Below, one piece after another: positions 1-59,580 of a stretch of 64,000 bases of DNA. The DNA lies in NCBI GenBank assembly GCA_030704615.1, contig CM060732.1, forward strand, positions 9,176,001 to 9,240,000. Direction: 5' to 3'. Within the stretch, counting starts at the first letter, position 1; the number at the start of each line of letters is the position of its first letter. The notes below the pieces were generated by a model. The model was not told where the DNA came from. It did no database searches and worked only from the letters and a program-made list of their open reading frames with translations. This DNA comes from Takakia lepidozioides. Lineage: Eukaryota; Plantae; Bryophyta. The position numbers and the translations under genes were made by a program.

Positions 1-3000
1 CGACAACAGGATCGAACCTCTCGTTTATGAAACATCCTCCCCCATGAAGCTCGAACTCAACCACTGTGGTGGGAGTCGACAGTGGATGTACCCTCACGAG
101 ACAGACGGCCTCAAATAGACGGGTCTGCGATGAAGAGGTCAATAATTAGTGAGAAATGTTTCATAGCACATCTGGGTGGGAGTGCAGATCCATTCCGGAT
201 GGAACGGGTTCAGAGTCATTGCTCATGCACCGCCAAAACTGAGTGCGCTGAAGCACTCAATTCAGGCAGTGCGAACAACATGACTTCATAACAGTCAGTA
301 CAGTGGAACTTCAACAGAGAAGGCATAAAAATAAAGTATTTGAAACGTACCTTCTGCCCTGGGCAATCCCCCTTTGTCAGATATAGGCTGTTGACACAAT
401 TCCAGGTCTTGATAATCCGCATCCCCGACGCTTTCAAGTAGCTTGCCAGCTCCCGACGACATCTCATCGTGACAGATTGTATGATAACAAGAACCCCTGC
501 ATCGGAAAGGAAAAACTTGCAAAAGGAAAACACCCAACTCCAATACCTCTCGTCAAATTTGTTCCATGTTGGGTAGGTGTCACTGGGCAGAATATCCGGG
601 ACTGGATGCCCGTCCGGAATGTCCACAATAACCATCTCCGAAGCAAACGGTTTCAGTGCACCATTCACCCAAGATTCCTTTCCCCTCCATGCCTGCAAGC
701 AATATAGCGTGTAAGAAGGGAAAGATGTTTTATAAGCGACCTTTCTGATCCGAGCAAAAAAAAAAACAAAGGAAACAAAACTCAAACACATGCATGATAA
801 TTGCTTACCGATTGGAGAAAAGCACAGAGCTTGTCCCATGTTTTGGAAGGATCACCACTGTAACTTGACTTCCTTGTCTCCATCATGGCCAGGAACCCGT
901 CGTTTACCAGCTCGCACATGCCCGCAAAAATGATTCTAGATGGGTGCTCCATTGCATCGTAGGGCTCTTTAAGACCCTTTTTCTTTCGGTCAGGCTTTAT
1001 GGCTGGGGGTGGGGTCTGCAGTGGCCCCGGTTGCACCACGGACTCCATCTCATTATCATTCGAAGTGTTTTTCTGCCCCTTTACCTTCCCTTTCCCCTTG
1101 TCCTTTCTAGGCTTGACTGGCGTATTTGGTGCAAGAGGCTCTTTCTCAGCCAATATCCTCAAGTTTCTCTCGTGCAACTCCTTGTCCGTCAGAGGGGCCA
1201 AGGCCTCTGCATTGTCGTTTTGATTTCGGGTCACAAGCTCAGACCAAGGGCATCCAGACCGTGGGATATCCATATACTAGCAACAGTCTCGAAGATGCGA
1301 GGTCCCGTAATCCTTCAAAATCCTTGCAGTGTACATTGTCTGAGCGTTGGATGGATCACACCATAGGTCAATAAAGTGCGGGTGTCGACTCAGGTTCTGG
1401 CCTGGAATGAGAACGTTTTTGATGTACCTACACAATCAAAACAGAGGGAATATTAGTGAGTGGGGAAAGTGTGAGATAATTGTTTAAGGACCCCTTGACT
1501 GAGTGCGCCAGCGCACTCAATTTTTGGTCTATCCAATCAGGCCCTACTTACAAGCCAGGGCAGGTGTGGTTCAGTACAGGATTGGATATTCGTATGTACA
1601 ATGAGAGCTTGGGAGACACAGAAGTGCCCACCCCTTTACTGAGTGCGTCAGCGCACATAGTTTTGGGACTGTTTATTCAAAAGAGCAGGGCTGCAACGAA
1701 ATCAAAACTTCGTGAGAAAAGAAAGAAGGGTGGGAAAAGAGTGTCAAGACGAACCTGTATAGAACCCTCTTCATGGCCTATTCTGATCCATGCTGCTGCT
1801 CGAAGTCGTTAGTGCGCGAGATGCCTCCCTCTTTGGCGAACTCCCTGAAGAAGCAAGTGCCGAAGCAAGCTGCTTTCCACTGGCGGACGTAGTCTTCTAG
1901 AGTATCCGTCGGTGGAGTCATAGTTATCTTGTAATCGTTCAGCTGTTTCTCCAGAACCAGCTGTGCCCGAGCCTCTATCTGCGCAAGAACAGTTCTACAA
2001 TTCAGAGAAAAGATGTTGAAGAAGAGTAAGTGACTTTTCCCGGTGCAATGCAGATTTGCAATGGAAATGGAAAAGGGAGAGGAAAAAACCTGTGCCCGGT
2101 ACGTGGCTTAGTGCAGCCACATATCAAGAACATGGTCACTGCATTGTTTTATGACTCCTGTTTCCTTGTTCTTCTCACTCTTTGGAAAGCAGTGGTTATC
2201 TTTCACTGTGGGGTCGGCGTTCCAAATCTCAAGCCATTTCACTACACAACGACAATGGACAGGCGATGAAGCTTCTCCTGCATCATTTCAGGCTTGGTGT
2301 TCACGTTCCAGTGGATCCTGACCTGATTCAAAGAACTTCGGGCCAAAAGCAGGGTCGGCTATTCTGAGTTGTTTCACGAACGCGCTCATGTAGTGCCTCT
2401 TCGCCACCTCCATCTCCTTGTTCATAGATTCTTCCACTCCTTTTGAGGATCGCTCCCCTGGGTCTTTTTTGGCATAGTACTCTGCTTTCCCTTTCTCTCC
2501 ATCCTCCGCAATCTCTTGCTGAACATTCCAGTATACAACTTATTAGTCAACTGGTTTTATGAATGAACAAGTAGACAGAGCTAGTGAAGGAATACTTACA
2601 GCGTACATGTAGTCACAGAAAAGCCTCCCTGGTGAGCTTGTACCATGTGTCGGCGGATTTGGAGGTCTCACACTTCTTGTAAGCCTCAGCACTGATAAGG
2701 TTTTTGAAGGTGACCAGTGGCATTTGGCCCACCTTCTGTATCCTGAATAGAGTGTGCACCAAATTTGTCGTCACGTGTGTACTTTCGGTTCCCCTGCAGT
2801 CCCAACAAACACTATGACTTCCTCCTTCACCAGGAAATACAAAACTGATAGAACAAATCGGAGAATTCTGTTGGCATGAAGGGTGAGCATTATACTTACT
2901 TGTTGATGTCATGCATAGCCGTAAGAAGTGCTGTGACGTTTCCTTTCGGATCCAGCACCATGGACGCCACAAGGTAGTGCCAGTCCTCGTCTGTGCTGTG

Positions 3001-3433
3001 ATATTTGTTTATGACGTTCATCCGGCCATGAAGCGGTGGTTGCCATCCCAAATATGAAACATTTTCCCGGAGAACACCTGTGTGGACATTCTCTCAAAAT
3101 CTGGGCTTCGAACTCCTCGTTTACTTCTCGCCATATTGGATCCCAGCTTTTGACAATTGACTCGTCCACCTTGGACACATCCCCGGTCAGGGCAGGTCGA
3201 ACGATTGGCATTGATATTAGGCGGCAGAGAGGGATCATGATCTTGCCTCTAGGTACCAGCATAGACTTGATCACCCGCGCGGAATTGACCTTCTGGTACA
3301 CAAGGACCTTTGCCGCTCTTTCTTCGTAGAAAGGATCGTCTTCTTCAACAGGCTTCTCAGTCACTTCTTCCTCCTGCTGCTGCTGCTTCTCAAGCTGCAA
3401 TCCTTTTCTTTTCCTCCCCTGCACCTCCCACAA
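1..3433 (-). pseudogene. Spliced ParB/Srx-like + beta-class amino-DNA-methyltransferase-like gene, copy 1 (runs off the window start)
   Basis: Manual translation across a frameshift gives ...PLCRLISMPIVRP...GKMFHIWDGNHRFMAG (DGNHR at 3033-3047). GT-AG introns lie at about 2899-2794, 1754-1428 and 350-125. The exons LEDYVRQW..FFRE..AMKRVLYR and MYTARILKDYGTSHLRDC..YMDIP match copy 3. The methylase-like exon reads MVIVDIPDG...WSWVFSFCKFFLSDAGVLVI, then TRLFEAVCLVR. In-frame stops are present. That the exons form one gene is inferred. Confidence 0.7.
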
Positions 3434-5002
3434 CTACAGCCTTTCCGTCATTCCACAGTTACATTTTCCTGATCTGGCACCTACAAGAATTGAGTGCGGT
3501 GGCGCACTCACTTTCGAGACTGACAAAGGATCGGAACAGACAAACATCAGTTCTCCAAAACTACACACATAACCCTCCTTTCCCGTCAACCTGAATTGAG
3601 TGCGGTGGCGCACTCATTTTTGGACACCTTCCATGACATCTAAGAAATCATGCTCATTGCAGGCACTCAGTCAATGGCTCCTTTGTCACTTCCTCTTCCA
3701 CATTGTGTACTTCATTCTATAGGCAGAAACTGAGGCAGAATCTTCATTCTAGACATCATCAAATCAACCATCTACAGGTGCTCAAAAAACTGAGTGTGCT
3801 GGCGCACTCATTTCTGGGAGCCCTCCACTCTGTCCTGCTTTCTCTTGTGAGCACACCTGGGTCGTTACCTCTATCCACGAAGATGGTCGACCTCACCTTA
3901 GAACTGAGTGCACCACCGCACTCAGTTTCAAGGTTATCGTTTCTGTCTATCTGAAAACTCAAAAGAGATCTCACTTTGAATGAAACACACTTTCTAACTT
4001 TCGTTTCACGTCTGTCATTTGCAAATTGACCATTCTATGGTGATCCAAAACTGAGTGCGGTGGCGCACTCAGTTTGGGAGCCATCCATTATGTCTGCCTA
4101 CTTCTGTTTTGAGTTCATTGGGCTCTTCATGTCTGTCCAAAAACATTGTCGATCACACCTCGGAACTGTGTGCGCCAACGCACTCAGTTTCCAGGTTAGA
4201 CATAATGTCATTCTCAGAACTCATAAGAGATCTCACTATGGAATAATCGCACTTTCTATCTACTGTTCACCTCAGTCAATAGCAACTCAATGATTCCATG
4301 GAGCTCAGAAATTGAGTGCGGTGGCGCACTCAGTTCAGGGTGACCACTCCAGTGTCACATGCATAACTGACGGCTTTACAAGGTTCCTTACTTTCTCGAT
4401 TGTTTGTTAGTCAAGCTGGAGAGCAGTGGGAGTGAGAGAGAAGACATAGTAAGAAGACGTAGAAGGCAGTCCCTTTACTTCACGAGTGTGAGAGAGAGGA
4501 AAAACGCGCGAGTCAGAATGAGAAAGTTGTGCAATCTGCAAAACGCTGATGAGCTGGTTGCACAGGATACGTCAACCCATGAATCACAACAGATCACAGA
4601 GCCGGTCCAGCCTGAAATGGAGGGAAGAATGGAAGGCGAGGAGACTGCCCCGGAGACCATTGTGCATGACATGGACATCGACACCACCACCGTCGGTGAG
4701 AAAGAAGCGACACCAGAGGAAGCTGTGAGGACGCAGCAAGATGAGGCATCGGGAAGTGGTGTCATAAAACCCAGGGTAATCCTTCTCCCAAACTGCATGA
4801 ATCTCGCTTGACTGTCGTACCAAGTGCATAGATAGGATACAAGAGATCCCTTGAAAACTGGGTGCGGCACCGCACTCAGTTTTGAGGGGAGCTCTATCAC
4901 TTCCATTGTAGGCCGAGGTGAATAACTAAGTCTTAGAGACAGCAGGATCTGAAACGGAAGCCTGAGAGGGACACGGAGAAACCGAGTGCGGTGGCGCACT
5001 CA
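240..5002. repeat. Dispersed 20-26 bp palindrome (AAC)TGAGTGCG-N4-CGCACTCA(GTT), about 12 copies
   Basis: Copies at about 240, 1500, 1640, 3491, 3597, 3791, 3905, 4052, 4167, 4313, 4859 and 4983. They lie in introns of gene copy 1 and in the region between the divergent ParB-MTase and RING genes. Confidence 0.9.
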
Positions 5003-5194
5003 TTTCAACTGGATGCTTGCCGATCGCTTGGGCATGAGGGAAAGAGGAAGGTGATGTTCACAGTTTAAGTCCCTATAACCCCCCAAATGGATCGATCTCA
5101 CTGGCTGCGGCTTATTGGGCGCCCCTAATGCCATCAATAAGGCCGAGTTCTTCAAATGTGGATGTTTTTTTGATTTGGATGAAATATTGCGCAC

Positions 5195-6422
5195 ATGAGG
5201 CATGCCATCGCCCTATCATACATGGAGTTTGCCTTCTTCAAAACGAAAACATACATAACGTCAGGAACGCAATGTCCGCGTTCATCCGGCGTTGGATATT
5301 TCCCGGGTTTCCCGAGGATGTCATCCGGCATTCATGAGGAATCACGGACGTGGATACCACAGAGCAATCCAGCGTCATGGGTAACAGATGGTACGGTGTG
5401 CACAATGTGCCTAAACCCTTACGAACCGGAGGGAGGCTATATGCTTGGTTCATGTGGCCATTTGTTCCACCCCACATGTCTCATATTGGCAGCCATGCAA
5501 GCCAGCCAATGCCCTGATTGCCGTGGACAAATCCATCGACGTTTCTACGAGATGTTTGGGTTGCAAGACAATATGCCCACGTGATACGAGTACAACCGGT
5601 ACAACATGCCATTGGATGTGGAGCCTTACAATTTTTTAAATTGTCAGTACTGGGGGGAGACAATGACATTGGATGCTCCAAGAGAGATGCACGCCTTGGC
5701 TGCCTTGACTAAATCTAGGGTTAAAGATCCGGTGACCTTTTGGGTGACATTCAACTGGGAAATAACCGTGCGTGCTAGAGGCATACGAGACCCAGTCCAA
5801 ATGGAGTTTTTTTTGCCGGAACTTGGGAGGGCATTGGAGCTGTACCAGACAAAGATTTTTCCGACTGCCTGAGGATCCGTGGGTGCCAACGGAAAACAAC
5901 CCATACAATCGCGAACCGATTGGGAGAGACCTATTTCTGAGGGAGTTGGAGGACGTTAGCATCCGTTGGGATGATATGAATGAGAGGTACTGGGTACCTC
6001 GTCGGGATGAAGGGCCACTTCCTCCAGAGTTGCGCAGAGTCCCCCAGCAGGAGGAGGTGTTGGACAATTTCAAGGCTGCCATCAGGAGTGTTGTTCGGTA
6101 TTGGCAGAAGACATGGCGTGACCAAGTTGCCCCTATTCCAGGGGTATTCTTGCCACTTCCAAACATACCGGATTTAATTAAAAAATTGCATGACGCCGTA
6201 GCAAGAGCAACAAACTCGGCTCTGGCAAATGTAGAAGAGAGTCAGCACTCGCCTGGAACGCTACGCATGATGGCAAGGGTGGACCAGACAACACTGGGTC
6301 CTTCCTTGACCACTCAAGCCCAGGCTCGAGCTCTCCGTACTGGTGGAGGCACGTCCTCTACACCCGGAGAATCTTCATCAACACCTGGAGATGAAGACAA
6401 CGAAGTAATTAATCTAGATTAA
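5195..6422 (+). pseudogene. RING-H2 finger protein with conserved unknown C-terminal domain, copy 1
   Basis: CTMC...CGHLFHPTC...CPDC is a C3H2C3 pattern. It is followed by FWVTFNWEITVRARGIRDP..FFCRNLGGHWSC..REPIGRDLFL. Stop at 5582 and a frameshift near 5810. Confidence 0.8.
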
Positions 6423-6524
6423 GATGACTATAAAGGCTAGAAACGTACGGAATAGGCAAAAGGTCTCAGATTGCGAAAACTTAAATGTGCAACCCACTGT
6501 ATTGTCTACGTAATTTTTGGAAAT

Positions 6525-9200
6525 ACGAGGTTCATCCTTTGAACCATTTTTTAATGACCTCATACTTGTTTGGTACCCGTTGACGGCACGTACAACATAC
6601 TCGCAAAGTTTCAAAACAATAAAAAATTGCTGAATGAAGAAACCATTGGTTCACCCATTGCAATATTTTAAATCGAACTCATACTTGTCCGGTACCTTAA
6701 AGAGGGCATGTACAATGCAATGGCAAAGTTTGAAAGCAATCAGAAATCATTTCATCAATTAACCATCGGTTCATCCTGTGAACCATTTTTTATTGATCTC
6801 ATACTTGTCCGGTCCATGTAAGAGGGCATGTAGAACATATTGGCAAAGTTTCAAATCATTCAAAATTTATTTGATCAAGGAACCTTTGGTTCATCCTTTT
6901 CACCATTTTTGATTGACCTTGTACTTGTCCCATCCCTATAAGAGGGCATATACAACGCAATGGCAAAGTTGCAAAACCATAAAAAATCATTTCATCAATT
7001 AATCATTGGTTCATCCTTTGAATCATTTTTTATTCGCGTCATACTTGTCCGGTTCTTCTAAAAGGGCATGTACAACACACTCGCAAAGATTGGAACCATT
7101 TGATGAAGGAACTGTTGGTTCACCCATTGAACCATTCTTTATTCACCTCATTCTTGTCGAGTACCTGTAACAGGGCATGTAGAACACACTTGCAAACATT
7201 GGAATGAATCAAATATCATTTGACCCCCGAATTACTCAAACGAGTAACGATTAATCACGAATAAATGAACAATAGACGAATAAATCATTTGCCTCCCCAT
7301 CGACGCGCTCACCCCTCAAGCCATTCCAAAATTTAATTGAATTTAAATTAATTTTAAGCCAATAAATAGGTTTGCACTGCCTTTCATTGGGGGTTTCTGG
7401 CACGTATCGATTTTGTTTTTGGCTCAATTTTGTTCTGCGGCTTCAAGCATCCCACCGCTACTCCCCCGCCAAAATTTGGACCAATCAAAAATGCCCCAAA
7501 AAAAAGGTGTTCTCTTTCGCTTTACTATTGCAGAACTCTCTATGAAGAGTGTATGAAGTAGAACACAAATCAAGTTTGGAGTGCAAAACAAGGAAGAAAC
7601 TGTGGTTTTGGATCCAAATGAATTTTGTTCGCTCCCAAATTTGGCACGCACATTGCATATGGAGTCATTACACGCCCCAGTAAAAAACGGAATGAAAAAA
7701 AAAACATGAGCACGCGAAACGCAGTCCAACAGGTCCCAAAGTAACAACAGATGCAACGGAATACATTCAATGGGTGAACGGATGGTTGCCCATCCAAATC
7801 ATTTTTGTTTGCTTCCAAACTTTGCCAATACGTTTGAGACACCTTCTCACATGTCCCGGACTAATATGAGATCAATCGAAATTCATTCAATGGCTCAACG
7901 GATGGTTGGCCATCGAAATGATTTTGGTTCGCTTTGAGACTTGGCCAGTATGTTCAATGTACCATGTAAGAGGCCCCAGAGTAATATGAGATCAATCGAA
8001 ATTTGTTCAATGGGCCAACGGATGGTTGCCCATCCAAATGATTTTCGTTCGCTTTGAGACTTGGCCAGTGTGTTCAATGTACCCTCTGATAGGTCCCAGT
8101 GTAATATAAGATCAATAGTTAACGATTAATCATGAATCATCCAACAGGGGAACTGTTGATTCACCCTTTGAACCATTTTACATTGACCTCATACTTGTCC
8201 GATAACTTTAAGAGGGCATGTACAAGACACTCGCAAAGTTTCAAATCAATCCAAAATCATTTGGCAGGGGAATGATTGGTTCACCCATAGCCAATTTCAA
8301 GGGCTGAAATTGCCATTTCAGAGGGTCGAATTGCCAATTTCAGGGGCTGGACTTGCAATTTGAGGGGCTGAAATTGCCATTTCAGGGGTTGGACTAGCAA
8401 TTGCCATTTCACAGGCTACAATTGCAATTTGAGGGGTTGGAATTAAATTTCAGGGGCTTGAATTGGGGTTGGAATTGACAATTTCAAGGGCTCAAATTAC
8501 AATTTGAGGGGCGGCTGGAGTTGGCCATTTTAGGGACTGGCATTACCAATTTTAAGGGCTTGAATTGCATTTTGAATTGTAACTCAAGGGTTAGAATGGG
8601 CCATTAGGGGGCTAGAATTACCAAAGCAATGACATCCAAAGCAGTGACATCCAAAGCAATATAAAACCATTTGATAGTGGAATGATTGGTTCATCTTTTC
8701 AACCATTTTTTTTATTCACGTCATACTTGTCCGGTACCTGTAAGCTTGCCTGTAAGAGGGCATGTGGCAGACACTTGCAAAGCTTCAAAGCAATGTAAAA
8801 TCATTTGATAGGGGAACAAGTGGTTCACCCTTTCAACCATATTTGACTGACCTCATACTTGTCCGGTACCTTTAAGATGGCATGTGAAAGACACTTGCAA
8901 AGCTTCAAAGCACTCAAAAATCATTTGATATATTCATGATTGATTCACCCTTTCAACCATTTTAAATCGACTTGAAACTTGTGACAAGACCTGTAAGAGG
9001 GCATGTACAAGACACTTGCAAAGTTTCAAATCAATTTAAAATCATTTGGTAGGGGGATGATTGGTTCACCCTTTAAACCATTTTATATTGATGTCATACT
9101 TCTCAAAGACGTGTAAGAGGGCATGTAGAAGACACTTGCAAAGTTTCGGAGCAATAAAATATCATTTCATCGGGGAAGTTTCCGTTCACCCTTTCATCCA
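6525..9200. repeat. 120-bp tandem repeat array (type A) interrupted by an inverted type-B segment and a short-unit repeat
   Basis: Units recur at exact 120-bp spacing (GGTTCATCCTTTGAACCATTTTT..CTCATACTTGTCCGGTACC..AGAGGGCATG..GCAAAGTTTCAAA) at 6525-7225, 8140-8290 and 8650-9200. Related type-B units lie in opposite orientation at about 7730-8115. An AATTTCAGGGGCTG-like short repeat occupies 8290-8620. Confidence 0.9.
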
Positions 9201-9589
9201 ATTTTGAATTGAACTGGATTTTTACTAAATCAAATGATTTAGAGGGCATAGGATTGTGGATTTGTGGGGCGCAATGATTCGGACAACGATCATGAACTAC
9301 CACGCTCTCAACACTCAGAAAAAGAAGCTATGCATCCAGAACTGTCGTGTGGACTTCTCAGTCGCTATAGGCCCAATGCCTCTGACCCAGGAGGTTTGAG
9401 CGCTCGGAGCTGCCATAACATCTGCGTCATGTACACTGTCACTCTTCAAGATTCGTGGGTGTGGTGCTTGATTATCCCATATGATGGACCCAGGTGCCAT
9501 GACCAAGTAACAAACCATTAAAACATTATGGTACGAGACAAACACAATTGAAAACAACATTTATTCAAACATGATGTATAGTAAGAGGT

Positions 9590-10813
9590 CTACAAGTTTA
9601 TATCCATCCTCCAGCAATTTTTGGGCTCAGACCAATTGAATAGCCCCGTCATGAAATGCTTCACAACATTTTCTAGTTTGTACCGCAACTCTACTGTGAG
9701 TTTCCAAGAGCCGAAGCAAAACAGATTCTAGTAGACATATCATTGAACAGGCTTGCATCGAACGTGTTACCCCCATTTATTGCCTGGGCTATCTTCCCAA
9801 TTGCAAAGGTCTCTGATGGCACGGTTAGAGGGGCCTACGAGGTGTGTCATCTAACTGGTTGTTGGCTACATTATAAACAATTGCAATTTCAGGTGCAATC
9901 CACCATCTATGTGCGAGAGTCTTTATCATCTTGTCTCTGTTCTCGAAAATGTACAACGTGGTTTTTGGGTCATCCGTCGTGGAGGCCATCCCCCAATCGC
10001 ATACCCCGATGTACACATCTTTAGACCCTTGTGGAAAATGCAACAATATGTTGTCGGGGGACATGTCGTTGAGGTGGTGATTATGGACATTGAGCATGAT
10101 GTGCAAAAGCGCCCATGCCAATTGGGTGCGATTCTGTCGGAATCGAACCAGTCGGTTGACCTCCTGCATTTCCTGTCCGTCCCCCGTCGTTCCATTAACT
10201 CCCTGTTATCCCGATCAATCCCCCATTTCTTGTCAATACTCAACCATGATCGTATGGTCCCCCCAATCCAGTACCAATGTGTATAACCTTCATTTTGACG
10301 TGGATGCAACGCAAAATACTTTATGATGCCGAAATGATGGAACTTTACAGCCAACGCCTCATTGTTATGTTGGACTTTGGCAAGATCAGCATTTATTTCC
10401 CTGGGCGTTTTCCCTACTAGCTCCCAGGATGGAGGAATGAATTGATCCCCAACAATTCTAACCCTCCAAATTGTACCATACCCTCCATGTTTGGGCGCGT
10501 CGAGTTGTTGTACCTGTGCGTTTGTGGATATGTATCTCACGTTCAATGTCGCATCCGCGGACGAGGACCCTGCCTTCCATGGGAGTGGTTTTGTACGTCG
10601 TTTGGCGTGGGCCTTTGCCATGTCAAACCACCAATCCAAAAGCACAAACAACTCCTCCTCCGAAGTTGGCATGCAACCTTCAGCTACAGGTGTTCTCGTA
10701 ACAAACTTTTCCATGGTTTGCCTCAGATTCCATGTGGCATCATGGGCCCGGTCCTCCATCCATTTCATGAACTGGAACTTCGCCCTGTCCTCCTTCCATT
10801 CATCCCCGGCCAA
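9590..10813 (-). pseudogene. Atypical Ser/Thr-type protein kinase with unique N-terminal domain, copy 1
   Basis: Gly-loop HGGYGTI, VGK lysine, catalytic loop NDMSPDNILL, DWG in place of DFG, and RWWIAPE. Frameshifts present. Confidence 0.8.
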
Positions 10814-10834
10814 AGCATGTCCGGAAACATTGCT

Positions 10835-11090
10835 TCGAATGCAGTGTCAGGGGGTTCCTCGGGGAGTGGGTGTAAAGGTAGGAAGCGTAAACATGCACAT
10901 GAATACGACAGTCAGGTCAACAAAAAAGACTATCCAAGCGCAGAGGCCGCGAAGGGGGTGAAGCAAGTAGTGCTGGATTATTTGAAGGACAATGACATAA
11001 TGCGTTTGAATCTTTTGTATGTCCGACATGGGAATGAGGGGTTTCTTAGATTCCAACACAATATGGAGATGAGAATGAGGGAGGAGCGAA
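10835..11090 (+). pseudogene. N-terminal segment of kinase copy 1, locally inverted
   Basis: RKRKHAHEYDSQVNKKDYP..VKQVVLDY..MRLNLLYVRHG..QHNMEMRM on the + strand matches the in-line N-terminus of kinase copy 2 (RKRKCAH*RDSHVNKQDYP..VKEVVVDY..MRLESAYVRHG..QQNMERKM, 57715-57930, - strand). Confidence 0.75.
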
Positions 11091-11254: not shown

Positions 11255-11513
11255 TTGCGTCCACCGCCTATGCTGCCGGATCATGAAAATGAACCCGAGT
11301 ACGAGGTAGAACCAGTGTTTAAGTCAAGGAGGTTCAAGAATCAAGAAATAGAGTATCTCGTGAAATGGAAGGGCTATCATCAAGTGGATGCAACTTGGGT
11401 GCGTGCCTCAGAAATGGGAAACGCACCGGAGGCGGTTCAAGCTTTCGAAGGGCAACCTCAAAAGCGGAAGAAGCGTTGATGGGGACATCAACCTTAGATT
11501 GGGGGGGAAGAAA
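11255..11513 (+). mobile_element. Chromovirus (Ty3/Gypsy) integrase C-terminal chromodomain and polypurine tract
   Basis: PPPM..EYEVE..KSRR..EYLVKWKGY..DATWV..MGNAPEAVQAF, followed by GGGGGGGAAGAAA and then TG. Confidence 0.85.
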
Positions 11514-12191
11514 TGCATGTTTAGTCCGGCTTGGTTAGCTCAGGAATCTGATTGCAAAGACTTGTGTTGTACATATCTTGTTTATAAAGAAACCGTTTCC
11601 CAAATGTGTTGTTTCATATTTTGTCTTGATGATATGATATTTTGTTACTTTGTAGTGTGGGCTATATGGAAGCTACGTGCTTCCATTCACGTACTATAAT
11701 CGTGTAACCTCGGGACGAAGTCTTAGTGCGACTTTGGCGTGTTCCCGTACCTCAGGCCAACTTCTCAAAGCGGGCTCAATTATAGTGATTGGGGCACACG
11801 GTTAGTTCAAGGTTATCTTCCTAGTCAAAGGGGTTTAAGGCAAACCCTTGCTCAAGGTGATGCCAAAAAAACCGGCATCATGAGCGGTCGCAAGCAAATA
11901 TTGTTGCAGTAAGGCGATTCGATCCTCGGGGAGGATCGTACTTTGGCATGAAGAGGGCCAAAAAGAGTGCACTGGGTGGAGCTTGGGAAGCTCCACCCCT
12001 TGGCCGTGACTTGGGAAGTCGGCCGAACTAGCTAGTGGGGAGTAAGAGTCAAGTGGGGGTTTGGTTCTTTGCCATGAGATGCCATGGCACGGAAACAAAC
12101 TCCTTGATGTGGAATGCCACAACTTGGATGTTAGTTTCCACAAGAAGGGACAAGTCGATGAGGACATCAACTCCTTGTTGGTAGAGATGTG

Positions 12192-12935
12192 TGTCGCGGC
12201 CCTTTGCCTTGAGGGCAGGGGGTCGGGACACAAGAGGGGCTGTCCCTGTGGTGGGGGTAGCGGCAGCAAGTAGGAAAGACGGCTGAAGCACCCTTGAGTG
12301 CCAAAGGCATTCAAGGAGGCGGAGGAGCTCACTAGGTGGAACCCCGCAAACCGGGTTGCGGTAGGGGGGCTCCACGTGGGGTGGTGGTAGCTTAGGGAGT
12401 CGTAGTGGGGGTGGCATAAGACTCATCATGGGGATGAGGCCTTGTGGTGGGAGTCGTGGGGAGTCGTGGGGCTCACCACGGTCCATTGGGGCCATGGTAG
12501 GTGGGCCAAGAGTCACCGCGACTCATCACAGGGAGTCAAGGGTCTTAGTAGTGGTTCACCAGAAAAGGACTTGGCTGTTTGTGAGACTCTCGCCGACACC
12601 TACAAAAGTATATATAGGGAGTATTAACCCCGAGAACGGTGCAAGCCCGTTAAGTGACCAAAAGTTGTTGAATAAGCGAGCGAGCCAGAAAGTGACCAAC
12701 GTTGGGAGCTATTCCGGACTGCCAACAACCGAAGGGGATTTCCACTGGCCCCCATTGTTCGAGGGTTTAGGGTTTAGGGTTCGAGGGTTTCATGGAGGAG
12801 CAAGGGGGACCGTTATGTCCCAGTGTGCAGCCGAAGCTCCGAATCAGCCCGACAGCCAGTTTGGGAGTTAGGCGCGCCCATCAAAGCGAGTAACTATGAC
12901 TTGAAGGGGAGTTTACCAAAGTGAGGTGCGCGACA
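12192..12935 (+). mobile_element. LTR-like repeat (TGTCGCG...CGCGACA), no TSD
   Basis: 7-bp inverted termini. Strong similarity to 16140-16775 and, inverted, to 41312-41610. Contains TTTAGGG repeats at about 12765-12780. Confidence 0.7.
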
Positions 12936-14830: not shown

Positions 14831-15364
14831 GGTATGCTTTCTTCTTTTTGTGTGTCTGTGTGCCTCTATGTGGCTGGCGGGATTACCATGCTTATAAACA
14901 CTCTCTGATGGGGTGATTACTGTACAAACATCCATGATGGCAACATTTGTCATATCAAAGACTCAAACACGACTTGGCAGGTGTCAACTGGTGCCCAAGA
15001 AAAGGTCGAAACACTCGACAGACAAAGCAATGAATTTGTGTTGGAGAAATCCACTGAGGTGGACTATCAGTCCTTCTACTCATTACTTTATATGTCTATA
15101 ACTATTTCATACCTCTTTGTGTGTCTGACCAGACATCCTTGCCTCTCAGGAGAGGGAAGAGAGAAGAGAAAACCAACTTCGGAGATCTCTCGGGGCTGTG
15201 GCTGTCACCAAAACTGACAATGAGGTATTTGGACGGGAGATCTCCTGTCCTATCATTCCTATGTAGATCTCTATGTCATTTGTATTTCGATCGATCCCAA
15301 AATACACTTTTTTTTTTCAAAAAAAAGTTTTCATGGACTTTTTTGAACTCATAATGCAAGTTTT

Positions 15365-16139: not shown

Positions 16140-16775
16140 TGTCGCGGCCCTTTGCCTTGAGGGCAGGGGGTCGAGACGCAGGAGGGGCTGCCCCTGTGGT
16201 GGGGGCAGTGGCAGCGATAGGTTCGGGGGGCTGAAGCACCCTTGAGTGCCCAAAGCACTCAAGGAGGCGGAGGCGTTCACTAGGTGGAGCCCCGCACACC
16301 GGGTTGCGGTGGGGGTGGCTCCACAAGGGGTGGTGGTAGCTTAGTGGGACTTAGTGGGGGTGGCATAGGACTCACCATGGGGCGGAGACCTTGTGGTGGG
16401 AGTCATGGGGAGTCTTGGGACTCATCACGGTCCAATGGGGCCGTGGTGGGTGGGCCAAGACTCACCGTGACTCATCACCGGGAATCGAGGGTCTTCGTGG
16501 TGGTTCGCCATAAAATGACATGGTTGTTTGTGAAACCCCCGCGGACAGTCACAAAAGTATATATAGGGAGTAGTAACCCCGAGAACGGTGCAAGCCCGTT
16601 GGTGACCAAAAACTAGTGAGTAAGCGAGCGAGCCGGAAAGCGACCAAGGAGTGGGGAGCTATTCTGGACTGCCATCTACCAAAGGGAATTTCCACTAGGC
16701 CCAAATTGGTGGGTCTGGTGGAAGAGTAAAGGGGGACCGTCAAACCCGACAAACTGTCTGACCCCACATTCGACA
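16140..16775 (+). mobile_element. Solo LTR-like repeat (TGTCG...CGACA), mismatched flanks
   Basis: Homologous to 12192-12935. The flanks TCCCC and TGTGG do not form a TSD. Confidence 0.7.
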
Positions 16776-16879
16776 TGTGGATGAACCGCATGACATGGTG
16801 GTTTCAGGTACTTTCCAACGCTTCATTTGGCGCTTCTACTCTTGTATCTGGTGGATTTATTGTATTTATTGAGGAATGC

Positions 16880-47964: not shown

Positions 47965-48810
47965 TCTGGCGGTCGTTTTATTTTTCAAAAAATAAATAAA
48001 AATAGTGACCACTATATTGGCGGTCGCTTCAATTTATTTAAAAAAAAAAGCAAGATTGGCGGTCGCATTGGCGGTCCCCTAATTTAAAAGAGAAAACAAG
48101 CGACCGCCGTATTGGCGGTCGCACAATTTTGCAAATATATACAAAACAAGCGACTGCCATATGGCGGTCAGTTAATTTCAAAAATATATAAAAAACAAGC
48201 GACCGCCATTTGGTGGTCGCTTAATTTCAAAAAATATATATAAAAAACAAGCGGCCGCCATATGGCTGTCGGTTAATTTCAAAATTATATTAAAAAACAA
48301 ACGACATATGAAAATAAAAGCTACCGCCACACCGGTGGTCGCTTATTTTAAAATAAAACAATATTTGCGACCGCCAAACTGGCGGTCGCATAAATTTAAA
48401 AATATATAAAATAAAAGCGACCGCCAAACTGGCAGTCGCTTAAACTTGAAAATATAAAGATTAAAAGCGAATGCCGTACTGGCGGTCGTGTTTTAAAAAA
48501 AAAATTAAGAATAAAAGCGACCACCGTACTGACGGTCGCGTTTTTTTTAAAATATTAAGAATAAAAGTGACCACCATATTGGCGGTCGCTTAATTTTAAA
48601 TATATAAACAAATGAAGCGACCGCTATACTGGCGGTCGTATTATATTTTGAAATAAAAAACAATAGCGACCGCCATACGGGCGGTCGCTTAAATTTAAAA
48701 ATATACAAATTGAATCGACCGCAATATTGCACAAAATGAAAAGAAATAAAAGCGACCACAATAGTGGCGGTTGCTTGTGTTTCATAAAAAATAAAAATAA
48801 CGACCGTTTA
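47965..48810. repeat. Palindromic array GCGACCGCC-N4-5-GGCGGTCGC with AT-rich linkers (left)
   Basis: Roughly 15-20 degenerate units at about 45-55 bp period, directly upstream of the hAT gene. Confidence 0.9.
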
Positions 48811-49209: not shown

Positions 49210-51250
49210 CCAGAGGAGTGGATATTGGGTGAAGATGAGGGAGGAATAGAGCCCTTGGTATACGGCAATCTCGAACACTGTTAGTGCCACTGGCAATGTT
49301 GAGTGCAACCTATGTGGACTGAAGCTTTCTTATCGTAAGGATCGGCTGCTCGCTAACCTCAGCTATAGAGATGTGAAGAGCGCCAGAGTGGGTTTATGCC
49401 TTAAAGCATCTATGCGGATAAAAAGCCATTTTGCCCAGTGTGGAGGCATTATTCCAATGTCTCTGGATCTGGACATGAACTCTGAGCAAAACACTTCATC
49501 TTCCCGTCAAGATACCCCGATTAGTACCCAAGGCGACTCTTGTGAGGCTTCATGTGTCCTTGGACAAGTGGATTGTGCCGAAGCAAAACTTGCTTCAACA
49601 CCTCTTTGTACCCCTACACTTCAACGGAGTAGAGAATTACGGCAGCAATCCATGCAGGAAGGTCTTAATTTGTCTGCGAAAAAACAGTTGGATAAAAAAT
49701 GGGCGCAGTTTTTTTTCGAGGCCAACATATCATTTAATGTGGCTAGGCTTCCGGCATTTGTTTATGCCGTTAGAGCAACCTCGGAGTCCAGATCCACGTA
49801 CGTGCCTCCGACTTATCACAATCTCCGCACATAATTGCTAGAAGACGTCATGACCAAACTTACCCAAAAGGTCAACGATAGGACGGGCGAGTGCATCAGA
49901 AAATATGGAAGCACTATATGTGCCGATGGTTGGAGTTCTGTTACAAACAGACCATTGTTCAATGTCATGCTCGTATGTCCAGCTGGGGAACAATTCTTGG
50001 GATCGGTGGACACTAGCGGCGAGAAGAAAGATGGACGTTATCAATGCCAGCTATTGACGGATTTCATCGAACAGGTCGGAAGTGATAGAATCGTGCAAAT
50101 ATGCATAGACAATGCCGCTAACATGATAAACACTGCAGACATGTTATTGGCACGTTATCCCCATATGTACTATCAAGGTTATGCTGCTCATATCCTTGAC
50201 CTCCTTTTGGAAGATTGGGGAAAAGAACAGTGGGTGAAACAACTTGTCAAGCAAGCGAAGACCGTTGTGTCGTTCATTCGTACACACCACACCCCTTTGG
50301 CAATATATAGGAGGCATGAACCCCAAATACAGCCTCCGGAATCCAGACGAAACTCGTTTTGCCACTAACTTCTTGATGGTGGATCGGTTGATGATGGTGA
50401 AGAGCAGTCTGGAGCACACCATCATCGATCCTCAATGGGATGCATACACACGGACATTGCGGGATTCCAGAAAAGCCAAGTCATTGGGCAAAAGTCAAAA
50501 AGTTCGGAACAGCATTCGTTGCGATGATTTCTGGAAGAAATGTGAAAACTTTGTTTATATGGTAGAGCCGGTGTTAATCGTCTTGCGGGAGTTTGAGCAA
50601 CCAGTAATGGGCAAGACATGGTTATTAATGCAAAATCTTGAAAAACATGTCCAATCCCTGAGGCATCCTCACTTCATCTTGGAACCCGAACTTGCGGACA
50701 GTGATGAGGATGCATTTTATGACCGTCGGTCGATGGTTCGAACAGACTTGCATTATGCGGGGGCTTTGCTCAATCCATTCTTGCTCGACAATACCATGCT
50801 CCGAGACGACGCTGATGCCAAGGCCGGCCTCATGCGAGTGCTCATGCGACTGGCTCCGTCGAACATGGCAGAGAGAGCTATATCCGAGTAGAATGCTTCT
50901 CAAACTGCCGCGATCCTTTTGAAGACATTCCGGATCCAAAAAAACTCAATATGTTGCCACATGAATGGTGGGATTTGATTGGAGCTAGAGCAAGAACATT
51001 GGCTCCCATTGCGAAGCGTATTCTTGCCCAAGTGTGCTCTGCCTCATCTTGCGAATGCAATTGGAGCAGTTACTCATTTGTTCTCAACAAGATTTGCAAC
51101 ATGTTGAATCCCGCGAGGGCTGACAAATTGGTATATGTGTATATCAATTGTCGACTACTACGTGAGAGGGCAGCGGATGATGTTGCAGCATGGTATGAGA
51201 GGAATTTGCATTCCGAAGACTCTGCTTCTGAGGTAGATTCGATGAGTGAT
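49210..51250 (+). pseudogene. hAT transposase (BED finger + DUF659 + C-terminal dimerisation domain)
   Basis: CNLC BED-like motif; WAQFFFEANISFNV; ICADGWS; QICIDNAANM; AAHILDLLLEDW; ETRFATNF; LHYAGALLNP; EWW..IAKRILAQVCSASSCECNWS..KLVYVYIN. Stops at 49832 and 50889; frameshift near 50330. Confidence 0.92.
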
Positions 51251-51789
51251 ATACTGAGTCTCAGAGGGAATCATCTCAAAAGGAGTCATCTGCCTCCGAT
51301 AGTGGAGATGGGTCCGATGATGCTCCCGACAATGCGTATGACCCGTTTACGTTCACAGAGGAGGATGCCTATATCCAGCCGATCTTTGATGACCTTCTTG
51401 AGGAAGTACGTATCGCAGATGAAAGGTGAAGCTGCAATTGTGTCATCCCCAGAACATGGTCCTCAGAATGAAGTTGGGGTCGACCCTCGCCCCCCACTAC
51501 ACGTTGAAGCCACCGGCAGTGCCCCAATGGAGCTCAGGGGTGATGAACTACCAGGACCGAGCGACGTACACAACCCTGTTCATACAAACGATGGTGCCAA
51601 ACCATTGTACAGTCGACGGAACGGGAACATGCCTCACCGATATGACCAGCTCCACCACAACGCCAAAACTGATCTAGCTCCCCATCAACACAGCGGGCAT
51701 TAAGGAGCAATATGGTTGATCTGTTTTCCACACACACGTGGGAATTGGAGATAAAGGAGGAGTGGGACACCACAAGAAGGATGAGCAGC

Positions 51790-52848
51790 CATATCAACGC
51801 GGCCAAGAGGGAGGAGATACCACGAGGTGTTTTGCAGTCATGAATATCAGATGGCATAGTTTGTTCGATGTGCAGGAATCCATACGGCCCAGAGGGATGT
51901 CATGTGCTTGGATCGTGTGGACATGTGTTCCATCTTGCATGTCTTATCCCGCAATCTTTGCGGATGAGCGCTTGCCTAGAATGTCGTACATCAATCCATC
52001 GCCGTTTCTATAAGCTGGTGGACTTGGAGGACATGATGCCGATAGATTTTAAATACAATTGACACAATCTCCCATTGGATGGTCAACCACATACATTTCT
52101 GAATTGTGTGCATTGGGGCAAAAGCTTGTTGTGGGATGCAGACAGAAAAATGCATGCCATACATGCCACAAACCCGCAATACGTTAGATCACCCCAATAT
52201 TTCTGGGTCACATCTAACTGGGAGATAACAATACATGCGGGAGGCATTGCCGATTGGTGGGAGAGAAAGTAGTTTTGCCGCAATTTGGGAGGGCATTGGA
52301 GTCAGAGAAAGACGAGGTTTTTCTGGTTGCCACAGATTCCATGGGTGTAAGAAGAAAACGAATTGTATAACCAAGAACCGATTGGGAGACATTTGTTGTT
52401 GTCCGAAGTGGAAGATGCTATAATATATCAACGCCAAATGAATGAGGCGTACGAGGCGGCTTATCGTCGAGACGACACAATGATTAGGGACCGGGCCCGC
52501 GAGAGGGTATTGGAAAGTTTCAAGGGTAGCATCAAGGCAGTTGTAAAGGAATGGAAGTGACTATGGACAGACTGTTTTCTTCTTGTTTCGGGGGCTCTGT
52601 TGTCGAATGTGAACGGCCTCATTGCCGATTTGCATGCAGCCCGAGCACGCGCCGAAGATCAACCTCCGCCACGTCGTGAGAGTCTGGAAGAGAGTCAACT
52701 TTCGTCGAAAAGTAGGCGGATGCTCGTCACTATTGATCAAATCCCATTGGGCCCCTCATTGACCACGAGATCACAGTCCCAGGCTCTCCGTATTGGCAGT
52801 GCAAATCAGGCCACACCATCACGTCCCTTGCCCCCTTCATCACCATGA
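51790..52848 (+). pseudogene. RING-H2 protein, copy 3 (diverged)
   Basis: CSMCRNPYGPEG..GSCGHVFHLACL..CLECRTSIHRRFY, FWVTSNWEITIHAGGI, QEPIGRHLLL, DQIPLGPSLTTRSQ; stops present. Confidence 0.8.
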
Positions 52849-53319
52849 AGTGAAGACAGTGACGAACGAGATTTCAATCACTAGCAACGTAGTACATAGA
52901 CTGTAGACAATGTGGATTTTTGTTGTACCTTGAATTTCTGCAATACACTGATAGGACTCTGCCAATTTTGTATATGCATCAATTTTGTTAATGCACAATG
53001 CACATGTGCGACACCTGCCAATTTCAATTGCATGAACAACGTTTTCTTCACATTTTCACTCGTGTGATGGGAAAGAAGTGGTTCACCCTATAAACACATT
53101 TACTATGGTGTCATATTGGGTCATGATGTGTATGTGGGTATCTGCAATGGACTCCGAAAGCTGGAGAACAAGGAAAAATGATATTAACCAATAAGTTATA
53201 ACGAGTTACGAACGGTCGTCTTCCAAACAAATTTTGCCTAGTCTCGTATTTCATAATCATTTCGAAAATTCTATCTACGTGTGACGAACATACCCACAAA
53301 GTTCTTGAAGCACAAAATA

Positions 53320-54775
53320 ATTTTGATTGATCTCATATTACTCAGGGACCTGTGAGATGGTACGTTGAACATACTGGCCAAGTCTCAAAGCGAAAGAAAA
53401 TCACTTGGATATGCACTCTTTATAGAGAGTTCTGCAATAGTGAGCAAAGAGAACACCTTTTTTTTTGGATCATTTTTGTTTGGTCCAAATTTTGGCAAGG
53501 ATGTAGCGGTGGGAGGCTTGAAGCCGCAGAACAAAATTGAGCCAAAAATAAAATTGATACGTGGCAGAAACCCCCAATCAAAGGCGGTGTAAACCTAATT
53601 GCTTCAAATTCATTTAAATTCAATTAAATTCTCGAATGGGTTGAGGGTTGAGCACGTCGATGGGGTGACAAATGATTTTTTCTTTTGTTGTGTCTCTGCA
53701 TATATGTCGCACACATGTTCAAGCACATGCGGACAAAAGATGGGCTTCAACCACATCCGTTCAATGGGTGCAATAGTCGTGCACGCATTGCATGATTTCT
53801 TTTTCGCAATGAACAAACACTGGATGACAAGTGAACGCCTCATTGGCCCATCGAACAGATTTTGATTGATCTCATATTACTTTGGGACCTGTCAGATAGT
53901 ACGTTGAACATGCTGGCCAAGTCTCGAAGCGAACGAAAATCATTTGGATGGGCAACCATCCGTTGGCCGAGGATTGATCTCATATTATTCTGGGACCTCT
54001 TAGATGGCACATTGAACATACTGGCCAAGTCTCAAAGCGATCCGAAATCATTTCAATGGGCAACCATCCGTTGAGCCATCGAATGAATTTCGATTCATCT
54101 CATATTAGTTCGGGACCTGATACATGGTATGTTGAACATACTGGCAAAGATTGAAAGCAAACGAAAATCATTTGGATGGGCACCCATTCGATCGCCCATT
54201 GAATAAATTTTGTTTCGTCTCATATTAGACCAGGACCTGTTACATGGTATGCCATTTGAAGCTCTTTTTGTAGTGTCTCTTGCTTCGTAATGCGGTGGCA
54301 TTTTATCCAATATGTCGATTTCTTGGAACAGATCCACACGTGTGTACAGAAATCCTTAAATAACCAAATTACCATTGCAACTTTTATAAGCCTCATCCCC
54401 AGCTTCCAGTTTTCATGGTCATTTGATTTTTTAAGTATTTATATACGCATGTGTGGATATGTTCCGGATGGAGAATATCAACATTGGAAAAATAAGAGTT
54501 GGAGAAGCACCTCATTACGAAGCAAGAGACATTACATAACACCTCAGCATGTTGAACATTTGGATGAAGAATCTTGCCCATCGTCACTTCAAGCGCTTCT
54601 GAAATGATCACATGTTTGTTGGTGGAAGCTAACGCGTCCTCGTTTCCCAACCACATTGATGTACCGGGACCTGTTGCATGGTATATTGAACGTAGTGGCA
54701 AAGTTGAAGCAAACAAAAACCATTTGGATCGTCAACCATTTGAGAGGGGGGTGAATGATTCGATCGCCCATTGAT
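53320..54775. repeat. 120-bp repeat array (type B) with spacer segment and fold-back inserts
   Basis: GATCTCATATTA..GGGACCT..TTGAACATACTGGCCAAGTCTCAAAGCGAA..AAATCATTTGGATGGGCAACCATCCG units. 53410-53670 matches the reverse complement of about 7300-7550. Confidence 0.85.
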
Positions 54776-56499: not shown

Positions 56500-57935
56500 C
56501 TACTCCGTCCTATATACGCCTTTGGGCTCACGCCAATTGAATGGCTTGCCCATGAACCGAAGTACTATATGGGCTAATGTGACTCTTTCTTTCTTGTTGT
56601 TGTCGTACAATTTTTGTAGCATTGAATGCCAACAACCTCTCGTAAATTGGTCCTCGAACATACTTTGATTATAATGAGCGATGTCATTTATTCGTACCGC
56701 TATCTTCCCAACGGCAAAGGTCTCCGACGTCATGTCCTGGGGGGGGGGCATTCACATTAAAAACCGATGCAATATTTTTTTCCACCAACCATCTTTTCGC
56801 GAGTTCCCAGTCCAGCTTCTCCTGGTTTTCAAACTGGTACGGCGAGACTTTGCGTATGCCCAATGGGGTGGCTAAGCCCCAATCACACACCCCAATCTTG
56901 ATCTCCTCGGTGCCATCTAGAAAATACAACAAGATTTTGTCGAGGGACAAGTCGTTATGCATGACACCGTTCTTATGGACAACATCCATGATGCACACCA
57001 GTACCCATGCAAGTTTACTGCGCACTTTCCAGAAACGAAGCAAGCGATCGCACTCCTGGAACTCTGTTTCCATTCCCTTTTGTTCCAAAATCACCATGTC
57101 GTCCGAATCGTTGCCCCATTTTCTATCAAGGTTCATCATGTTGCGTATTGTCCCCGCATTCCATCAGCGAGTGTAACCCTCTACCTCACGTGCATTCATA
57201 GCAAAATATGAGATAACACCCGGATGCTGGAACTTCACTCTCAAACACTCGTCGTTATGTTGTCTCAACGAATTTTCTGAATTTTTGGACTTGGGTATTT
57301 TTCCCGCTAGCTCCCAACGCTCCGGTATTCTAGAATCGCCAACAATCCTACACTGACGGACCTTAGCATACCCTCATTCTTTGTAAGGGCCAACCTCTAC
57401 CACCTTCACACTTGAGTTCAGATAATAAAGACCAGTTGTGCCTCCCCCGTCCGATGTGCCTTCCAAGGGACAGCCCTAGTCCGGCGTTGTGAATTCTGAC
57501 TTGCCGAGCAAACCCAATACTCGACATGCCGCATTAACTCAGCTTCGGCGGAGGGTTCCCGACCCTCGGTTGTTCTACCATTCCATGTCTTCTTTAGCTG
57601 CTTAAAATTCCACGTGGCCTCTTTCGCCCTACTTTGGATCCACCGATTGAACTTCGGATTGTCCCTGTCCGCCGTCCATCTAACCCCCGCCAAAGCGTCC
57701 GTCATTTTCCTCTCCATATTCTGCTGGAAAATCTGAAACCATTCTCATCCATGCCTGACATAAGCACTCTCCAGCCTCATCATGTCCTTACGCTTGAAAT
57801 AATCCACTACCACTTCTTTCACCCTATCCAAGGCATCCGGTCCCGGGTAGTCTTGCTTGTTGACATGGCTATCCCGCTAGTGGGCACATTTTCTCTTCCT
57901 CCAACCCCCAGACGACCCCGCACCAGAACTTGAAT
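56500..57935 (-). pseudogene. Atypical Ser/Thr-type protein kinase, copy 2
   Basis: Same N-terminal domain (ATWNFKQ..RRTRAVPWKA), GYAKVRQCRIVGD..WELAGK, HNDLSLDKILL, IGVCDWGLA, and C-terminal FNWREPK; stops and frameshifts. Confidence 0.8.
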
Positions 57936-58404
57936 TCACAACCCCCGACATTGTATAAACTTTAGCCCACTACAGGGGATAAAACCTCAGAAAATGGCAA
58001 TGGACGCGTGTGAATGGTATCTTCGTAGTTTCTGCAAAAAAACAGGTCGCCGGAGATCCGAAAATGGCAAAATGGTGATACGATGATTGAACCGTGAACA
58101 AGGGTGTAGGACTGACCAATAAAAAACCGACAAAACCTCTCCCCCTCCCCAAAAAAATCACCTTTGCACCTCCCGTTGGCAGTGCTAAGCAACGAAGTCC
58201 GAAAGGACTACAGGATGCCAAGGAACCGCACCACGAGAGGGGCAAAAGTGATCAAAAAAAGAGGGGGAATGGTTTATATAGGCGCCCACCAGCCCCCCCT
58301 CCAAAAAAATGGCATTATGCTTGAAAAGGCGCGACAGGCCAATGGCGCCTCGCCATGTGTCAATGCGGCGCGACTGACCAGTCGCACCTCGCCATGCGCA
58401 CATA

Positions 58405-59580
58405 CATGGGAGAGATCAAGGGTTCAAAACCACCTCTCCCCCCCCCCCCTCCCATTTGGTTCGTTTTTCTTGATCAGTGCCGCCTCGCCTCGTGGCTGCC
58501 GCTTAATGATTAAAAAAAAAAACGACCGCCACACGCGGGTCCCTGGATTTCAAAAAAAAAAAAACACGCGACCGCCACATGGTGGTCGCTATATTTATAA
58601 AAACAAAAAGAGCGGCAGCCATTGCATTTTTTTTAAATATATTAAATAAGCGCCCGTCGTTTGGCGGTCGCTTAATAAAAAAAACGACCGCCGCCAAATG
58701 GGGGTTGCTATAGTTTTAATTTAAAAAAATGACCACCACATGGCGGTCACTGCATTTTTTAAAAATATATTAAATAAGCGACCGCTGTTTGGCGGTCGCT
58801 TAATTCAAGATTCAAAATTAAAAAAATGACCGCCGCCAAATGGCGGTTGCTATAGTCTTTATAAAAACAAAGCGACCGCCACATGGCGGTCGTTGTATTT
58901 TTTGAAATATATTAAATAAGCGACCGCCAAACGGCGGTCGCTTAATTCAAGATTCAAAATAAAAAAAAGTGACTGCGCAACCAGATGGGAGATGTCAACG
59001 GTTCAAAACCACCTCCCCCCCCCCTCCCATTTGTTTCATTTTTCCTGACCCGTGGCGCCTCGCCATGTGGCTGGCGAGGCGCCGCTTCATGATTTAAAAA
59101 ACAAAACGACCGCCACACGGCGGGTCCCTGGATTTCAAACAAAAAACAAAAACATGGCGGTCGATATATTTATAAAAAACAAAAAGAGCGATCGCCACTG
59201 CATTTTTAAAAAATATATTAAATAAGCGACCGCCGTTTGGTGGTCGCTTAATTCAAGATTCAAAATTAAAAAACGACCGCCGCCAAATGGCAGTCGCTAT
59301 AGTTTCTATTTTTTTAAAAACGACCGCCACATGGCGGTCGTTGCATGTTTTAGAAATATATTAAATAAGCGACCGCCGTTTGGCGGTCGTTTAATTCAAG
59401 ATTCAAAATATAAAAAAAGGGACCACCGCCAAATGGCGGTCGCTATAGTTTTTATAAAAAACAAAGTGACTACCACATGACGGTCTCTGCATTTTTTTTT
59501 TAATTATACATTAAGTGACAACCAAACGGTGGTCGTTTAATTCAAGATTCAAAATAAATAAAAAACGACCGCCGCCAAAT
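58405..59580. repeat. Palindromic array GCGACCGCC-N4-5-GGCGGTCGC (right), with higher-order duplication
   Basis: About 20 units. The block 58405-58560 is repeated at about 58985-59150. Lies upstream of kinase copy 2. Confidence 0.9.

Follow-up and report, generated by a model that had tools for sequence, protein, structure and literature searches.

Elements of the hAT superfamily (the Ac/Ds type, with the DUF659 transposases of plants) are textbook single-gene transposons, and the subterminal repeats of Ac are short motifs reiterated near the ends. Plant Mutator and CACTA elements can carry an accessory gene for a Ulp1-like protease. In KDZ/Plavaka elements, accessory genes of the TET/JBP kind have been described (Iyer et al. 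2014, as cited in PMC12477816). Passenger genes for a ParB-like protein and a DNA methyltransferase are found with inverted-repeat arrays in Sola1-1_Ec32 of the brown alga Ectocarpus (PMC12477816) and are also reported for the Plavaka elements PAG2/PAG3 of the red alga Bostrychia (bioRxiv 10.1101/2025.02.11.637652). Here we analyzed a stretch of 64,000 nucleotides from the bryophyte Takakia lepidozioides (contig CM060732.1 of assembly GCA_030704615.1, positions 9,176,001 to 9,240,000; below, the window), in which three segments, A, B, and C, had been predicted to be copies of one family of giant DNA transposons with a cargo of a ParB-DNA methylase, a RING-H2 protein, a kinase, and 120-bp arrays, with or without a hAT transposase. 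What looked like a module of four genes is an artefact, produced where the broken copies of two repeat families lie against each other. We are fairly confident that the window is a transposon graveyard with the remains of two DNA-transposon families, unrelated to each other and both high-copy, which make contact only at truncating rearrangement junctions. Every copy of both families in the window is dead. Family 1 would be a large hAT element that carries a divergent protein-kinase-like gene and a large RING-H2 gene, with its genes behind arrays of the conserved motif GGCGGTCGC, often in the form of a palindrome. Family 2, represented here by three broken copies, would carry a spliced ParB/Srx-like and DNA-methylase-like gene together with palindromes of its own.

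Intact relatives of family 1 are present in metagenomes. An exhaustive search was seeded with P0001, a protein of 368 amino acids (aa) from a public contig whose DNA is 96% identical to the kinase-like gene of segment A, and it yielded 111 kinase relatives, the full-length members of which measure 500 to 650 aa. One of these relatives is carried by metagenomic contigs of two studies, approximately 99% identical among themselves, of which L012 and L015 hold a whole element of 15.8 kb, with intact genes for a kinase (494 aa), a RING protein (1039 aa; zf-RING profile match of 35.3 bits), and a hAT transposase with DUF659 and Dimer_Tnp_hAT domains (966 aa), and with a further gene, X. The element starts with CAGGGTTACC, which is of the CAGGG type, and finishes with GACAACCCTG; its terminal inverted repeat (TIR) pairs CAGGGTTACC with the reverse complement of CAGGGTTGTC at the opposite end. 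Across L012, L015, L006, and L017, the element is flanked on the left by three distinct sequences and on the right by another three, showing that the 15.8-kb element was inserted at several sites. In tblastn comparisons with the window, residues 7 to 681 of the L012 transposase matched positions 49250 to 51220 in C at 41 to 55% aa identity, the L012 RING protein matched B, C, and A at 37 to 41% (including its N terminus, at 22913 to 22513 in B), and the L012 kinase matched A and C at 34 to 53%. In L011 and L013, which are two more distant lineages, the kinase adjoins a homologue of the RING protein. The methylase is absent from the hAT-RING-kinase element of L012 and L015.

To judge from these sequences, the combination of hAT transposase, RING protein, and kinase is a real and mobile hAT variant, and a literature search for such elements found no description of it. 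The original prediction had spoken of an old mobile unit with an undescribed combination of genes. The first part stands, since RING, kinase, and hAT occur together in a complete outside element, at 34 to 55% aa identity to the window copies, but the ParB-methylase is not part of that unit. The second part applies, within the literature searched, to hAT plus RING plus kinase, but not to ParB-methylase passenger genes, which are published for algae (PMC12477816). Like other hAT elements, family 1 combines DUF659 with the hAT dimerisation domain in its transposase, has short CAGGG-starting ends in its intact relatives, and reiterates short motifs near its ends. It differs in its size of 12 to 16 kb, compared with a few kb, in its two or three conserved extra genes (kinase-like, RING, and a paralogue of the N-terminal domain of the RING protein), and in the arrays of one common motif, of which every gene has its own ahead of it. 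With the KDZ/Plavaka, Mutator, and CACTA elements it shares the long retention, by a cut-and-paste element, of an enzyme other than the transposase, with chromatin or host proteins as its probable targets; here, however, the enzymes are kinase-like and RING-type ligase-like, and the element is a hAT.

A conserved N-terminal domain of approximately 130 aa is common to the RING protein and the product of gene X; it was noted at 4701 to 6256 (minus strand) and 8281 to 8880 of L012, at 4138 to 4737 of L011, at 3223 to 3771 and 5050 to 5649 of L013, and at 22689 to 22994 of the window. Its fold model has a helical core with a predicted local distance difference test score (pLDDT) of 80 to 90, and Foldseek found no match to it in the PDB. 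For the C-terminal part of the RING protein, no relatives were found in a word-indexed protein collection.

The most complete remnant of family 1 in the window is copy C, at approximately 47.9 to 59.6 kb, which is nearly complete but dead. Its left array (47968 to 48800) consists of units of approximately 50 bp, each with the palindrome GCGACCGCC..GGCGGTCGC, and lies ahead of the hAT gene, a plus-strand remnant at 49250 to 51220 that is interrupted by a single in-frame stop and by two or more frameshifts (Pfam DUF659, 1.5e-33, and Dimer_Tnp_hAT). The RING-H2 remnant follows on the same strand at 51718 to 52848, with several frameshifts and without a counterpart of the N-terminal half that is present in B. 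Tandem units of 108 to 120 bp (53300 to 54250) separate it from the kinase-like remnant on the minus strand (56509 to 57900), in which the catalytic loop reads HNDLSLDK and is followed by DWG. Right arrays at 58512 to 59585, ahead of the kinase gene, repeat the palindrome of the left array. The hAT, RING, and kinase genes of C are all disrupted, by a stop and by frameshifts.

Copy A (5312 to 11084) is cut at both ends and is without the hAT gene, both end arrays, and the 5′ half of the RING gene. The remaining RING part lies on the plus strand at 5312 to 6422, with the break at 5311/5312 (Pfam zf-RING, 1.4e-8); its C3H2C3 profile matches, which place the protein among the RING-H2 fingers, are 35 bits for zf-RING_5 and 32.7 bits for zf-RING_2, those of B being weaker; the protein is predicted to be ligase-like. 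Next come 120-bp units at 6529 to 9215, arranged in three blocks in plus, minus, and plus orientation, and a frameshifted kinase-like gene on the minus strand (9772 to 11084). The copy stops at 11084, where it adjoins a chromodomain and a long terminal repeat (LTR). The N-terminal 269 bp of the A kinase gene (10816 to 11084) are inverted in place relative to both C and the public contig L001, which is 96% identical. Copy B (20720 to 23707) comprises an array and three quarters of a RING gene. The gene lies on the minus strand at 20720 to 22994 and has the true N terminus, but it is frameshifted and its 3′ end is cut near 20720; the array ahead of it (23411 to 23707) is built from 52-bp units with the palindrome TGCGACCACC..GGTGGTCGCA.

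Much of what had been read from the letters of these copies was confirmed: the identity of the RING and hAT genes, the decay of all copies, and the reality of both the 120-bp arrays (A and C) and the GCGACC-type arrays (B and both sides of C). The order of RING, array, and kinase, with RING on the plus and kinase on the minus strand, is also kept between A and C as claimed. The overlapping synteny of all three segments is upheld only in part. They do share genes and arrays, with RING in A, B, and C, the kinase-like gene in A and C, methylase-like pieces in A and B, and hAT in C; the methylase and RING genes, however, point away from each other in A and toward each other in B. Strong divergence of the proteins was likewise true of one comparison and not of the other. 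A and C share 44 to 54% of aa over the RING region (5315 to 6365 and 51778 to 52818, both plus) and 42 to 47% over the kinase-like region (9867 to 10816 and 56753 to 57696, both minus), but the RING copies of A and B (5312 to 6148 and 21548 to 20717, inverted) are 91.6% identical in nucleotides. The methylase-like pieces of A (477 to 961) and of the B fragment (15379 to 15857), both on the minus strand, share 50 to 53% of aa. At 8% difference, the ratio of nonsynonymous to synonymous substitution rates (dN/dS) between the A and B RING copies was 0.9 to 1.0, and it was near 1 between copy A and its close relatives. By this measure the A and B RING copies have been in neutral decay since their shared source, which has no bearing on selection in the family; a local origin by copying is conceivable for one of them.

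Arrays of 120-bp units are located between RING and kinase in A and C, and none is found there in L012. The middle block of A (7269 to 8116) is 82 to 87% identical in nucleotides, in inverted orientation, to 53411 to 54241 of C, while the genes beside the array blocks are at most approximately 65% identical and the other A blocks are approximately 70% identical to 7269 to 8116. Because this block is far more alike than the flanking genes, the arrays must turn over separately from the genes. The plus, minus, plus layout in A forms long inverted repeats. Single 120-bp units did not differ significantly from shuffled sequences as structured RNA (z-scores of +0.5 to −1.9).

The kinase pieces of A and C match Pfam Pkinase at the catalytic loop with 21.7 and 20.5 bits, below the cut-off. 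Combined into one profile, the two pieces matched 511 kinase chains in the PDB, the best being CK1 at 2.5e-5, and several relatives lie above the Pfam Pkinase threshold (P0010, 57 bits; P0011, 40.6; P0021, 35.4; P0007, 33.2). Conserved in 16 full-length relatives are AGK with the beta-3 Lys, EAL with the alpha-C Glu, HND..N with the catalytic-loop Asn, DWG, and APE; across the same 16, the HRDxKxxN loop has Ser or Thr in the position of its Lys. On these motifs and profile matches, we regard the kinase-like family as real and assign it, by sequence, to the eukaryotic protein-kinase-like superfamily. Many contigs of 1.7 to 2.7 kb (L002, L003, L007, and others) each contain a lone, intact, full-length kinase reading frame and are scarcely longer than the gene, which would fit transcripts.

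The 9-mer GGCGGTCGC, counted with one mismatch allowed, occurs 66 times in the window, where 5.2 occurrences are expected, and the arrays of B and C, three in all, account for nearly every one. In L012 there are 37 occurrences for 2.2 expected; clusters precede the kinase gene, gene X, the RING gene, and the hAT gene, and one more separates the 3′ ends of the RING and hAT genes. As it is enriched in both the window and L012, the motif represents a cis element conserved across transposons that share only one-third to one-half of their protein residues. Where copies of family 1 are alive, their transposase or some other protein of the element may bind the motif arrays, which would then serve as shared promoters or binding sites, and the kinase and the RING protein may act on host or element proteins so as to favor transposition or blunt silencing. 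Tentatively, and with more doubt than belief, we suggest that the kinase and RING protein form a host-manipulation pair kept by selection in this hAT lineage across distant plants, one phosphorylating and the other ubiquitinating either the transposase itself or factors of host silencing or repair, and that the GGCGGTCGC arrays co-regulate all the genes through an element protein. If true, a hAT lineage with its own protein-modifying toolkit would offer a tractable cut-and-paste case, with intact copies in public data.

Family 2 is represented by three copies. The first (1 to 5309, minus strand) contains a ParB/Srx-like and beta-class methylase-like gene at approximately 1 to 3433, which runs off the window start. 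The second is a fragment on the minus strand (15379 to 16100) that covers the DIPDG region, has an in-frame stop, and is cut on its upstream side by an LTR. The third, more distant copy is on the plus strand (16880 to 20609), with DIPDG at approximately 19125 and ILDLTCGTG at approximately 19713. Read as motifs rather than as statistical matches, all three copies have DIPDG with a hydrophobic strand after it; in A, WDGNHR occurs near 3010 on the far side of a frameshift, and in B, ILDLTCGTG lies further downstream. This order (IV before I, after the ParB/Srx DGxHR) would be that of the beta-class amino-methyltransferases, although the loop reads DIPDG and not (D/S)PP(Y/F); with DIPDG in the place of the catalytic loop, the methylase-like protein may be inactive.

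Profile evidence did not accompany these motifs. All protein searches were run on stop-free pieces, each taken apart, with exons unjoined and stops never read through, which limits the methylase test. No piece matched Pfam ParB (PF02195) or N6_N4_Mtase (PF01555), a weak negative given that the pieces are short exons of broken genes, and PDB sequence searches with the methylase pieces gave no methyltransferase match. The methylase exon had no relatives in the word-indexed protein collection, and in two metagenome scans with methylase-like and ParB-like pieces the patterns matched but no relative was confirmed. The fold model of the methylase exon was unusable (pLDDT of 55.7). Language-model features point to PF01555 clusters at 0.89, which we treat as a lead only. 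The predicted ParB-methylase gene is thus backed by its three motifs and by no Pfam or PDB match. Like Sola1-1_Ec32 and PAG2/PAG3, the regions 1 to 5309 and 16880 to 20609 look as if they join a ParB-like motif to an amino-methyltransferase-like domain beside element-specific inverted-repeat tandem arrays. Unlike the algal elements, they occur in a land-plant host, their copies are broken, their loop is DIPDG, and neither domain reaches its profile threshold. The palindrome CTGAGTGCG..CGCACTCAG occurs 12 times, always within 239 to 4995, and is exclusive in position with the GCGACC-type palindrome, which is found only in the arrays of B and C. A tandem array of 146-bp units at 17235 to 18249 (4.8 copies, 89% matches) contains inverted repeats around a GGCGCC core; situated within or just ahead of the third methylase-like copy, it would be the palindrome set of that copy.

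Whether these genes belong to one module or to two families can be judged at the points where they touch. The methylase (minus) and RING (plus) genes meet head to head in A, and the methylase (plus) and RING (minus) genes meet tail to tail in B. Identity between A and B begins abruptly at 5312, whereas the B frame at 21222 to 21926 reads through the equivalent point, with 480 more N-terminal codons; the A/B identity stops near 20720, where A and C continue for approximately 270 nucleotides. Both methylase/RING contacts therefore truncate the RING gene. We also mapped contigs of four public runs to 3300 to 6500 at 80% likeness. More than 1000 contigs of the same organism matched, at 80 to 99%, with as many as 18 contig variants covering single positions of the left part and as many as 27 those of the RING part; in one run, summed depth rose approximately four-fold at 5312, which is a hint and not a copy number. 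In contigs that match from 5312 onward, the sequence ahead of the match equals the one upstream of 21548 in B, and those that match up to 5309 continue with a different but consistent sequence. Other copies thus run through the A junction on both sides, so that each repeat is interrupted internally there and the junction is peculiar to this locus. No translated similarity to the outside elements was detected for 1 to 5100 and 15300 to 20700.

A single giant family with ParB-methylase, RING, kinase, and arrays as cargo, with or without hAT, would account for finding four gene types within 60 kb and for the two contacts between methylase-like and RING copies. Given that the methylase is missing from every outside element, that the methylase/RING arrangement is opposite in A and B with RING truncated at both junctions, that other genomic copies cross the A junction into different sequence, and that the palindromes differ, we find this reading hardly credible. 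Nor do the segments seem to derive merely from a segmental or inverted duplication of one locus, an explanation that we hold to be very improbable. It draws on the A and B RING copies, which are 92% identical, 15 kb apart, inverted, and at a dN/dS of approximately 1, so that one may be a copy of an already dead copy; even for this pair, flanks and truncation points were seen to differ. A and C share approximately 45% of residues, too few for a recent duplication, dozens of RING-region variants exist in the runs of the same organism, a kinase contig 96% identical to A is without the inversion seen there, and unrelated metagenomes also hold the unit, its transposon ends lying at several sites of insertion. 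The earlier rejection of a recent segmental duplication is therefore sound for A and C, with the reservation that the A/B pair could be local. A third alternative accepts two separate families but makes them non-independent, through preferential insertion into each other or a functional interaction, and three methylase-type and three RING copies in 64 kb with two direct contacts would suit it. We consider it unlikely, since the A junction cuts both partners internally and exposes no element terminus, and so resembles a deletion or rearrangement rather than an insertion, and since both families are high-copy in a region that also has LTR retroelements, where crowding alone can explain contacts.

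Two unrelated families in contact only by rearrangement thus remain our preferred explanation, against which several findings weigh. Within 25 kb, two of the RING copies lie directly against methylase-type copies, a coincidence that cannot be weighed without the whole genome. Within the window, no transposase of family 2 was found, and none of the 89 stop-free stretches of at least 110 aa that made up our Pfam census contained a MULE domain, with the A copy running off the window start. The orientation of RING relative to hAT and kinase in C is unlike that in L012. As the original prediction had stated, no TIR or target site duplication (TSD) is visible for copies A, B, and C, and a dedicated search found none: beyond the right arrays of C there was no TIR, the ends of L012 gave one weak look-alike on the left of C, at 47857, and none on the right, and subterminal motif counts were at chance level. 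In L012 and L015, the flanking 8 bp mismatch, so that no 8-bp TSD is evident; these flanks may derive from different copies, and the mismatch may reflect chimeric assembly of a multi-copy element. The value of separating the families is mostly corrective, as treating them as one would mislead genome annotation and co-occurrence statistics.

The window as a whole is eukaryotic, repeat-rich DNA with a G+C content of 41 to 56%. An Rfam search of it returned no family, and the Pfam census returned RING fingers, weak Pkinase, DUF659, the hAT dimerisation domain, and a reverse-transcriptase fragment, and nothing else. Two direct LTR-like repeats, at 12185 to 12757 and 16133 to 16708, are separated by 3.9 kb and share 85.6% identity; just ahead of the first, at 11255 to 11476, a frame shorter than those of the census encodes a chromodomain (Pfam, 4.8e-12), and the fragment of the methylase-like gene sits between the two. 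They are probably remnants of two distinct retroelements rather than of one element. To the right of the B array, a weak RVT_1 match (1.5e-5) at 24100 to 24879 indicates more retroelement debris between B and C. Finally, an inverted repeat pair of 294 nucleotides (41865 to 42158 and 42792 to 43085; 92%, 633 nucleotides apart), which has a third relative 4.6 kb upstream at 37306 to 37447, looks like a foldback or miniature inverted-repeat element that is unconnected to the question of the gene module.

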